Assembly (NCBI RefSeq): GCF_006345805.1
Contig: NC_042997.1
Location: 57,040,001-57,104,000 of the forward strand
DNA length: 64,000 nt
Direction of reading: 5' to 3'
From: Octopus sinensis
Lineage: Eukaryota
Position numbers and translations under genes: made by a program. Positions 37,401 through 40,400 of the stretch are shown in pieces (position 1 is the stretch's first letter; every line of letters starts with the position of its first letter). The notes beneath the pieces were generated by a model. That model was not told where the DNA came from. It did not search any database and worked only from the letters and a program-made list of their open reading frames with translations.

Positions 37401-40400
37401 TGTTAGCATGGTAAAATAGTAAACTGTGCACTTTATCCCCTCTATCAGATTGTTATTATTTAACTCCTGGTCAGCTCTTATCTTTCAGATCTAGCAGAGT
37501 AGGATTGATGATGATGAAGCAACTTTGAGAAAGGTACAAGTTATGTTTGAATAGTGTGTGTTCCATGGAAGGCAATTGATGATATAAATGTACAGAAGTA
37601 TGTGTAAAATGCACTACATGCTGTGTTCTGGTTACTTAATAGTCTGACCAGGGAAAAATTCTTATTCCATGCAAAACAGAACCTTCTGTTAAACTTTGCT
37701 CCAAGACCCACTTTAGTTCAAACTCATAGAAAGAGAGAACAATTGCTCACTGAATAAATTACAGAAAAAGTGCAGATACAAGACATACATAATGACCGGA
37801 CATAAATCATTCACAATACAAATAGGCTATTCTTTGCAATTTTGTTTTTTCTAAGAAATAATCTATAAATCTAATAACAGAAGGTATTGTTTAATCATAA
37901 TCATTTGCTAGGAACTGTTAGTTTTCACAAAATAATGGGCTGAGACATTTTACTTTTATTAAAGCTGACAAAACTGGCAAGAGCAAACGGTATATATTTG
38001 CAAATTTAGTGAAATTTGTTGATAGGAAAATTGAACTTATAAGCATGTACTTATAAGATACCGTAACTTTTAGTCTAAAAATGCATTGCCATGAAATTGA
38101 TTTAGTTCAAGATAAGACAAAACTTATAAACCCTGCATTTAGATGGCTAAATATTATTAAATGAATGTTATATAGATGACTATATCAGGAGAGCGTTGTA
38201 CTATATACTATAACATAACAAGTTCAGCATCTCATTGTTCCAAATACAAATCTCTGTGATTTTTTCCCTACATTTTTTTTACATTCATAAACGAAATCCT
38301 AGTCATAGATCTGCTGTTTGTGCTATTTCAAAATTTTGGCTTGGTATCTGTTCAATATAATATTACTTATTTAAATATGACCTTTTCAGATGTCACTTAT
38401 TGATAAGATCATCTTAGAAGAATTACAGAAAATCAGACCAATAAGGAATTCAGTGATTGAACTGGTGATCTTCTTATACAACACCTGTATTTTGTATAAA
38501 CAAATGTAAGTGTTTATATACTGTTTATACACATGATTTATTTCAACCTTAATCCTTTTTAATCTGGCAGTGAATAATCCTTATGTCATTCCCTAATCAT
38601 TTAATTTAATTTATTTTAACACCTGTTGTTTTCTATTCCTGTCGGAGTTAGGTGAGTTTTCTAGGTTTGAAGTGTAAAAAATATCTTCCTCAATCTTCCA
38701 CTTCATTAAAAGTCGAAGACTAAGGAAGATTCCTTTCATATGAATTGCTTAGTTTTTATATACCCAACTGTCATCTTTCACACACACACACACATTTATA
38801 TTGTATTCTCTCTTACACACTACAGCTGATTCCTTTTATACACCGCTTTTCTCTCAACTTATTTATTCTCTGTTCATGCACACTGACATTGCACATCCAG
38901 CAAAGCACATTCACCTCATTTCTTTCTACCTTTCACACACCATTGCCTATGTTTCACAACCATACAATATCATACTTTGTACACAAGACTTATGCAACCT
39001 GCTTTTCACTTGGAAAGAGAATCCTTTTGTTGCTAGCAGAAGTAATAACTCGCTGAACCTCTTCTTTCTATCTATTCTTACTCTGGCTATTATAGTTTCA
39101 GGACACCTTCTATTGCTCATTAGGCCATCTAGGTAACAGGAGCTGTCAATTACTACCATCTGAACATTTCAAAGAATTCATTTCATGAGTGTACTTATTG
39201 CTCACTGCTCCAGTGGATCTGACTCTCCTTTTTGTTAGCCTACTTGTGATCACAGCTCACTTCTTGTGCACCCATAGTTCAGATCTCTGCGTATTGAGTA
39301 TGATAACTTCTCACGTGGCTGTTGAGTTTTTTCTTTTCTTTTCTACCAGCTAAAACCTTGGGTTTCGATAGGCTTTCTTTGAGGCCTCTCAGTCCTAAGC
39401 TTTGCTTCCATGTTTGGAATTTATTCTATAAATATTTGAATTAGCTATGAGAGCTAGATCATTAGTATACAGGAGCTCTCACACAATCAATCTTAAACTC
39501 TTCTGTTATGGCCTAGAGAACTATAACAAACAGGAGGTGATTGGAAAGAATGCTCTGATGGCTACCTATCTATACTCTAAACTCTTCATTTAACGTGTCG
39601 TTAACTCTCACCTTGCTAGTGAAATCTCTGTATTTGGCTTCCATGGCTCTCATAAGCCATTTATTTGCACATAGTTGAACTATTCATCTTTACCCACACT
39701 TGGCACCATAAATACATGTACCTGGGTACATGTCTGTGAGTCTGTCTGAGAGTGTGTATTTGCATGGATGTGACTGTGTGCATTTGTGTATCCATTCTCT
39801 GTGTGTGTCTGTATTCCTGTGTTTGGCATCTTGGTCGAGTATGTGTGAACATGCAGGCTTTTTATATGTGTGTGTATGTATGTATGACTAGGTGTACACG
39901 TGTATGTGTGTGTGTCCATACACATCTTTGGTGTAGTCTTTTTTGCCTTGTTTATAGGTGCAGGCATAGGTGTTTGGTAAGAGGTTTGCTTCCAACTACA
40001 TGTTTCCAGACCTTTTATCATGTTGTGTGTGTGTATGGTTGTTTATATTCCACATTATCACATGACATTGAGCAAAATGATGATGCTGTGTTTAAATTCT
40101 CTGTAAGCAGTATTTCCTGTTGCTCTGTACTTTTGAAGACCAGTAGAGTTAAACAAATATTTCCTTACTTGAAGCAGCTAAGAATTGGCTTCAGAGAGGA
40201 TTGTTAAATACTGCAACAGTTTGTCTCTCTCTCTCTAACTCATGCCAGCATAGAAAACAAACTTAAAACCAATGAGCAAATACACACACTAAAACACACA
40301 TATATCCATTTATGTGTGTGTGTGTTTGTATAATATACTTACATATACATACGTGGACATTAAATGATGATTTCATATATATATATATGTTTATTTATAT

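Follow-up and report, generated by a model that had tools for sequence, protein, structure and literature searches.

Loss of catalytic residues in the KEN domain

The DNA analyzed in this study is a 64,000-nucleotide stretch of the Octopus sinensis genome (NC_042997.1, positions 57,040,001 to 57,104,000, forward strand; hereafter "the window", with coordinates counted from its first letter), which contains 17 exons of the gene LOC118762493, encoding a protein with a C-terminal KEN domain related to those of IRE1 and RNase L. Three of the four catalytic residues of this domain have been lost (His to Leu, Tyr to Ile, and Arg to Tyr), leaving Asn alone, and the octopus KEN domain is most likely unable to cut RNA through the known mechanism, as judged from its sequence. 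This catalytically dead domain is probably kept as a structural, dimerizing, or RNA-binding module of a scaffold-like protein, a reading suggested by sequence comparison and a predicted structure.

The exon at 38390-38505 (+ strand) is preceded by the acceptor ttttcag and followed by the donor gtaagt, and frame 0 gave MSLIDKIILEELQKIRPIRNSVIELVIFLYNTCILYKQ(M). The encoded segment covers the helix-loop element and the helix bearing R-N-x-x-x-H in IRE1 and RNase L. Pfam detected Ribonuc_2-5A (KEN, PF06479) in the assembled exons (E=1e-8; 35.8 bits against a cut-off of 23.3) and in the full RefSeq protein (E=1.2e-8), together with Pkinase in the assembled exons (E=3e-14), and a HMMER comparison of the octopus kinase-KEN region with yeast Ire1 (PDB 3fbv) gave E=3.9e-30 for the whole match. 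Because of these values and the exact 17-exon chain described below, the match is far beyond chance. The positions of interest are as follows (all on the + strand).

38390-38505: KEN-domain exon under study, 39 codons, the last codon split by an intron (splice sites, translation, Ire1 alignment, PF06479)
38429-38431: Lys (AAA) at the position of yeast R1039, which binds RNA in the helix-loop element; basic residue retained (HMMER alignment; role of R1039 from PMC3149027)
38441-38443: Ile (ATA) at the position of yeast Y1043 and human Y892, the catalytic partner Tyr (HMMER and family alignments)
38477-38479: Tyr at the position of yeast R1056 (HMMER alignment)
38480-38482: Asn at the position of yeast N1057 (HMMER alignment)
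38492-38494: Leu (TTG) at the position of yeast H1061 (HMMER alignment)
38477-38494: degenerate active-site motif, TAC AAC ACC TGT ATT TTG (Y-N-T-C-I-L)

In yeast Ire1, H1061 is paired with Y1043 for general acid/base catalysis, the scissile phosphate is held by R1056 and N1057, R1039 binds RNA, and the H1061N substitution lowers ribonuclease (RNase) activity by at least 3x10^5-fold (PMC3149027). Y-N-T-C-I-L in the octopus replaces R-N-K-K-H-H of human IRE1-alpha. The original prediction, made from the letters of the window alone, had placed the exon here with TTG at 38492-38494, which the splice sites and frame-0 translation confirmed; its substitutions (RN to YN, HH to IL, and RPIR at the upstream Tyr position) were reproduced in the alignment to yeast Ire1. 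The alignment that it described as free of gaps was so against yeast Ire1 over the 16 residues of SVIELVIFLYNTCILY, with a single-residue gap just upstream, at yeast K1047. Its central claim, that this KEN domain lacks the catalytic His together with the partner Tyr and the Arg that binds phosphate, was thus supported. The motif of an active KEN/HEPN ribonuclease (R-x4-6-H with a partner Tyr) was absent from the octopus KEN domain, and no His was found in this exon or in the KEN exon before it (37086-37161). Rescue of the site by adenosine-to-inosine editing was considered and rejected: coleoid recoding of this type cannot restore the site because TTG contains no A, and so gives no His codon (CAY), and TAC cannot be edited to an Arg codon.

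The pseudokinase-KEN region (419 residues) was modeled in AlphaFold2 with the help of nine family sequences, and the model had a mean predicted local distance difference test score (pLDDT) of 79 and a predicted template modelling (TM) score of 0.77. Means of pLDDT over 10-residue blocks were 74-93 across KEN, and 86-92 over exon 38390-38505. In a Foldseek search of the PDB, IRE1 was ranked first (6w3c; E=6e-22, TM score 0.74-0.78), followed by RNase L (TM score 0.61-0.67). The IRE1/RNase L-like KEN fold is therefore predicted to be kept, in agreement with the intact fold that had been claimed and for which a structural comparison had been proposed.

Gene model

The window matched the O. sinensis chromosome record CM016859.1 with 0 mismatches in the 46.8 kb compared, and is AT-rich animal DNA carrying introns. 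The locus is LOC118762493, the product of which (XP_036357000.1, isoform X1) is labeled "uncharacterized protein" in RefSeq; it is thus annotated but uncharacterized. All 17 exons in the window were intact and reproduced residues 146-1803 of XP_036357000.1 exactly, with 16 introns (15 GT-AG and 1 GC-AG) between them; the gene begins with three coding exons that fall before the start of the window. When an IRE1 kinase-KEN sequence was used as a tblastn query, collinear matches on the + strand were found at ~22.0, 33.5, 36.0, and 45.7 kb, with a marginal match at 25.3 kb, and exon 38390-38505 is therefore part of a kinase-KEN gene. The exons are listed below (all on the + strand).

1337-3750: four ankyrin-repeat exons (1337-1444, 1828-1926, 2813-2911, and 3646-3750; RefSeq mapping and Pfam)
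5930-8627: conserved helical region after the ankyrin repeats, two exons (5930-6259 and 8397-8627; RefSeq mapping)
12626-18576: Lys-rich stretch and long low-complexity middle with tandem peptide repeats, two large exons (12626-13588 and 16676-18576)
20272-20422: pseudokinase N-lobe exon without a Gly-rich loop, with the beta-3 Lys (LAVK), and without the alpha-C Glu
21970-22158: pseudokinase exon, the 3' end of which encodes HGRLE (22144-22158) where active kinases have the catalytic loop HRDLK
25284-25395: pseudokinase exon in which DFG is replaced by NYG (25329-25337)
31969-32048: pseudokinase exon with CWQPSE, the equivalent of W-x-A-P-E
33490-33683: pseudokinase C-lobe exon
36006-36089: first KEN exon (HPYFWSNQRKLQFLLTVGSDILNALMLQ), donor CA-gtaagt
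37086-37161: second KEN exon, 76 nt (KNYNTEASIIYCLSICDTIGYFKNW), found via the O. bimaculoides protein
38390-38505: KEN exon under study, described above
45689-45827: last KEN exon and stop codon (SQEVKDILGEPFNYFLKKFPKLFQVIFHVIGKSNHRRRNIYRIFY*)

A broken gene was considered, since exon 36006-36089 ends in phase 2 and phase 0 is needed at 38390; this was dismissed because the 76-nt exon 37086-37161, which went unmentioned in the original prediction, restores the frame, and exon 38390-38505 is therefore in frame. An activation-segment exon also seemed to be missing after a motif search without result, and was identified at 31969-32048 (CWQPSE).

The order of Pfam domains and other regions in the full protein was ankyrin repeats (~residues 80-245 of XP_036357000.1), the helical region, the Lys-rich stretch, the low-complexity middle, a kinase-like domain (1464-1670), and Ribonuc_2-5A (1715-1798), with KEN directly C-terminal to the kinase-like domain, and the exon order in the window agrees. 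Approximately 1,150 residues, including a disordered region of ~1,000 residues, separate the ankyrin repeats from the kinase-like domain. This last domain is catalytically dead by its motifs: HGRLE for HRDLK, NYG for DFG, and the absence of a Gly-rich loop.

Uncharacterized lophotrochozoan family and changes in coleoids

The nearest relatives, found by an exhaustive HMMER search with one representative listed per named mollusc species, were single "uncharacterized" proteins of 1,300-2,000 residues with a matching architecture from Argopecten (XP_069113852.1), Solemya, Mytilus, Ostrea (XP_048759681.2), Patella (KAK6174412.1), Haliotis, Biomphalaria, Batillaria, Pomacea, and the annelid Owenia (CAH1796528.1). 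The top non-cephalopod matches among those listed had E=1e-46 to 5e-54. A word-index search with an early exon draft had returned only two weak plant/unknown kinase matches and missed the true orthologues. By sequence and architecture, the octopus gene is an orthologue within an uncharacterized mollusc/annelid family with ankyrin, pseudokinase, and KEN domains. The HG-x catalytic loop, x-Y-G for DFG, and the Tyr-Asn that opens the KEN motif are common to the octopus and its relatives, whereas KEN is much more divergent in the octopus and cuttlefish than in bivalves and gastropods.

Residues of the active site were compared among 11 non-cephalopod orthologues, including bivalves and gastropods, and two coleoids, the octopus and one cuttlefish (Acanthosepion pharaonis, CAE1227529.1). 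All 11 non-cephalopods read F-R-Q-Y-K-N-T-L-x-E-L-V-L-F-x-Y-N-C-C-L-H-F-D-K-M-S, in which the Arg is already Tyr and the catalytic His and partner Tyr are present. The corresponding sequences were I-R-P-I-R-N-S-V-I-E-L-V-I-F-L-Y-N-T-C-I-L-Y in the octopus and F-F-Q-Y-Q-N-T-L-T-G-L-I-L-F-I-Y-N-T-W-N-R-W in the cuttlefish. The His has thus been lost in both coleoids, to different residues (Leu and Arg, respectively), whereas the upstream Tyr has been lost in the octopus only and is kept in the cuttlefish. A set of Cys residues (Y-N-C-C-L-H, PC[KR]YF, and CY[KR]PFF) conserved in the bivalve and gastropod orthologues has also been lost in both. When the family KEN motif (Y-N-C-C-L-H and the upstream F-R-Q-Y-K) was used for comparison, the octopus retained Y-N and one Cys, and the cuttlefish Q-Y and Y-N. 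The Arg-to-Tyr change, as read from this alignment, is an old one, common to all molluscan orthologues examined. The substitutions described by the original prediction relative to IRE1-alpha therefore stand, but their real context is a separate lophotrochozoan family in which the Arg was already Tyr. The Cys/His set of bivalves and gastropods is not present in IRE1 or RNase L, and might be a metal or redox site.

Uncharacterized kinase-KEN proteins lacking R-x4-H were also seen in hemichordates, spiders, a scorpion, and a catfish. Absence of the motif is therefore not confined to the octopus, and motif-less KEN domains seem, from these sequences, to be widespread. In teleosts, short "IRE1-like" kinase-KEN proteins have expanded greatly in number, and some of them have CARD, PYD, or ankyrin domains; the motifs read were canonical (F-I-R-N-x-x-x-H), except for one flatfish protein (F-M-R-N-V-F-E-N).

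Comparison with IRE1 and RNase L

The module is nearest to IRE1 (ERN1; PDB 3fbv and 6w3c) in both sequence and predicted fold. As in IRE1, KEN directly follows the kinase-like domain and starts with HP[YF]FW, Asn1057 is retained, and the R1039 position still carries a basic residue. On the other hand, the octopus N-terminus consists of ankyrin repeats followed by the ~1,000 disordered residues, no luminal-domain family was found in the full protein by the Pfam scan, the kinase motifs are destroyed (HGR and NYG, with no Gly-rich loop), and the RNase residues Y1043, R1056, and H1061 have given way to I, Y, and L, respectively. The order of ankyrin, pseudokinase, and KEN domains and the catalytically dead kinase-like domain resemble RNase L (PDB 4oav and 4o1p), which was also the second-best structural match. 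However, the octopus protein has a very long linker between the ankyrin repeats and pseudokinase, lacks R-N-x-x-x-H, and is closer in sequence to IRE1: the best 16 PDB sequence matches were all IRE1, and RNase L kinase-KEN chains were absent from the best 60 listed. An ankyrin domain of the RNase L type was rejected, the similarity being that of generic ankyrin repeats, with far higher scores for designed ankyrin proteins. Since the module is nearer to IRE1, the domain order is RNase L-like, and the ankyrin similarity is generic, the gene is, on sequence and predicted structure, an orthologue of neither IRE1 nor RNase L.

KEN is a circularly permuted HEPN domain, and a survey in 2013 reported that the HEPN motif was conserved in ~95% of KEN domains, the exceptions not being followed up (PMC3710099). 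HEPN domains without Rx4-6H, such as MtlR, for which non-catalytic RNA binding has been proposed, are similar in this respect to the octopus KEN domain, but most of these come from prokaryotes, and they lack a fused pseudokinase (PMC3710099).

Selection on the gene and on KEN

The ratio of non-synonymous to synonymous substitution rates (dN/dS, or omega) was calculated by the Nei-Gojobori method between O. sinensis and O. bimaculoides, and sequence identities were compared between and within larger groups.

Whole gene in the window: dN/dS 0.164 (71 synonymous and 47 non-synonymous changes)
Ankyrin/helical part: dN/dS 0.033
Disordered middle: dN/dS 0.225
Pseudokinase: dN/dS 0.078
KEN: dN/dS 0.23 (4 synonymous and 4 non-synonymous changes; binomial P=0.049 against neutrality)
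Bivalves versus gastropods: identity of 50-63% in KEN and 33-45% in the pseudokinase
Octopus versus cuttlefish: identity of 34% in KEN and 54% in the pseudokinase

Divergence between the two octopus species was 2.4% in exons and 6.4% in introns, and the splice sites, reading frame, stop codon, and motif were conserved in O. bimaculoides. An omega of 0.164, exons less divergent than introns, and an unbroken frame with intact splice sites and stop codon show clearly that the gene is functional and not decaying. The dN/dS analysis suggested in the original prediction, carried out here on two octopus species, thus revealed purifying selection on the gene (omega 0.16). Retention of HHY by orthologues together with neutral decay of the octopus copy had been named there as evidence against the prediction; the non-cephalopods do keep the His and Tyr, and gene-wide decay was not found, while exon 38390-38505 by itself may be decaying neutrally. 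The relative constraint on KEN and the pseudokinase is reversed in coleoids, which fits the loss of an ancestral function at the KEN site with retention of the fold.

Proposed function and alternative explanations

In the explanation that we propose, exon 38390-38505 is part of an intact gene of the expressed type, LOC118762493. The Arg-to-Tyr change would have come first, as an old molluscan event, followed by the loss of the His and the Cys set, common to the two coleoids examined; this loss coincides with relaxed constraint on the coleoid KEN domain. KEN may now be a non-catalytic module for dimerization and/or RNA binding, with a basic residue kept at the R1039 position, and would end a scaffold protein in which constraint is strongest on the ankyrin repeats and pseudokinase. 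HEPN domains without Rx4-6H are thought to be RNA binders (PMC3710099). The decoy or dominant-negative role suggested in the original prediction is hypothetical; in reported in-trans experiments, His-dead Ire1 could stimulate its wild-type partner instead of poisoning it (PMC3149027).

Several observations weigh against this proposal, and most of them would also be expected if KEN were a relic being lost, with function residing in the ankyrin repeats and pseudokinase and with a near-neutral exon often left out of the mRNA, the main alternative, which we regard as somewhat unlikely. Exon 38390-38505 was the most divergent exon between the two octopus species (5/116 nt, 4.3%, of which 3 were non-synonymous), and its omega of 0.35 was not significantly below 1 (P=0.25). 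The flanking introns diverged at about the same rate (4.8-5.2%), and constraint on the helix encoded by this exon is therefore not demonstrated; the evidence for constraint across KEN as a whole consists of 8 substitutions. The low identity of KEN relative to the pseudokinase between octopus and cuttlefish points in the same direction. Several predicted RefSeq isoforms terminate ahead of KEN or within it: O. sinensis X2 at a TAA (36090-36092 region) made by a retained intron after 36089, O. sinensis X3 inside the pseudokinase, O. bimaculoides X3 directly after the exon equivalent to 38390-38505, and O. bimaculoides X6 before the kinase domain. In GenBank, the O. vulgaris model CAI9715102.1 ("IRE2") skips 37086-37161 and 38390-38505 and joins 36089 to 45689, the two exons amounting to 192 nt so that the frame is preserved, and the Pomacea model PVD20351.1 skips the same two middle KEN exons, also in frame. 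In view of the truncated isoforms and the skipping in O. vulgaris, KEN may be dispensable; expression and inclusion of the exon are themselves predicted, from RefSeq models. A compensating residue in the KEN pocket may also exist, as far as the structural model can indicate. Against a relic, neither O. sinensis nor O. bimaculoides shows any break in the frame, splice sites, or stop codon, and the cuttlefish KEN domain is complete; the other three KEN exons showed 3 differences in 299 nt, KEN as a whole had an omega of 0.23 (P=0.049), and the AlphaFold2 model of KEN was confident. A KEN domain that has lost catalysis and is kept as a structural, dimerizing, or RNA-binding module remains the reading that we prefer.

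A broader history can be proposed, although we consider it quite unlikely: the family may be an ancient lophotrochozoan lineage of RNase L-like sensors, in which the site was rebuilt in bivalves and gastropods as Tyr-Asn-Cys-Cys-x-His with two further Cys residues (a metal or redox nuclease, or an RNA-binding site) and abolished in coleoids, giving a non-catalytic scaffold. If true, this would provide a datable transition from enzyme to pseudoenzyme within a single orthologous gene.

The skipping in CAI9715102.1, in frame and straight from 36089 to 45689, could also mean that 38390-38505 is a pseudo-exon outside the real mRNA and its KEN helix a fossil inside an intron. This is improbable, since RefSeq models of two species contain the exon, and O. 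bimaculoides conserves its open frame and its strong splice acceptor and donor as well as its companion, exon 37086-37161. In addition, CAI9715102.1 uses two internal donors (20386 and 45761) that delete residues conserved in orthologues, and is therefore probably mis-annotated.

It is very improbable that the domain is still an RNase acting through other residues (the Arg after the lost Tyr in PIRNS, the Lys in YKQ, or partner residues in trans): basic residues do occur close to the pocket (Lys in place of R1039, and Arg in place of both R1041 and H1044), Asn1057 is retained, and the very strong conservation of Y-N-C-C-L-H in non-cephalopods suggests a working site of some kind there, but the two middle KEN exons contain no His, H1061N alone is sufficient for the large loss of activity in Ire1 (PMC3149027), and neither Leu in one coleoid and Arg in the other nor the fast evolution of the coleoid KEN domain would be expected for a conserved alternative site.

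Other features of the window

Exon 16676-18576 contains coding tandem repeats at 17216-17617: a 33-nt unit repeated 4.6 times (LVDVTPVAITT) at 17272-17424, flanked on both sides by repeat units of 18/36/54 nt (PDVN.. and PDLDVT..). There were 18 gapped columns in the alignment of this exon with O. bimaculoides. Related repeat copies in introns at 19837-20073, 20874-21045, and 30129-30521 (- strand), sharing the open reading frame (ORF) fragments ..GCTRLQSDLAW.. and ..LPNANH[FS][TS]E.., are probably a short interspersed nuclear element (SINE) or another interspersed element. Microsatellites were found at 37294-37346, (AT)26; 28911-29036, (TAT)18 then (TAG)25; 5300-5336, (CT)18; and 2617-2702, a (GTGC)/(TG) array. 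Downstream of the stop codon (45828-64000), there was no convincing coding signal, the sole ORF of at least 110 codons being at 61922-62254, and tRNA and Rfam scans of the whole window gave no matches.

Significance

To our knowledge, nearly all that is known about KEN domains comes from two enzymes, IRE1 and RNase L, the catalytic His of which has been called invariant. Our literature search found no paper on motif-less KEN proteins, mollusc RNase L-like proteins, or the ankyrin-pseudokinase-KEN family, and no experimental study of any motif-less KEN protein was found in the searchable literature. With the present analysis, the public label "IRE2", which is misleading, and what is probably a faulty gene model in O. 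vulgaris can be corrected. The family represents a third conserved animal kinase-KEN lineage, in which the kinase is dead and the RNase site altered, and one clade within it lost the remaining catalytic residues and kept the gene. The natural series from an IRE1-like site through Y-N-C-C-L-H to no site may allow one to ask which roles KEN has beyond cutting RNA: dimerization, RNA binding, and allosteric partnering.

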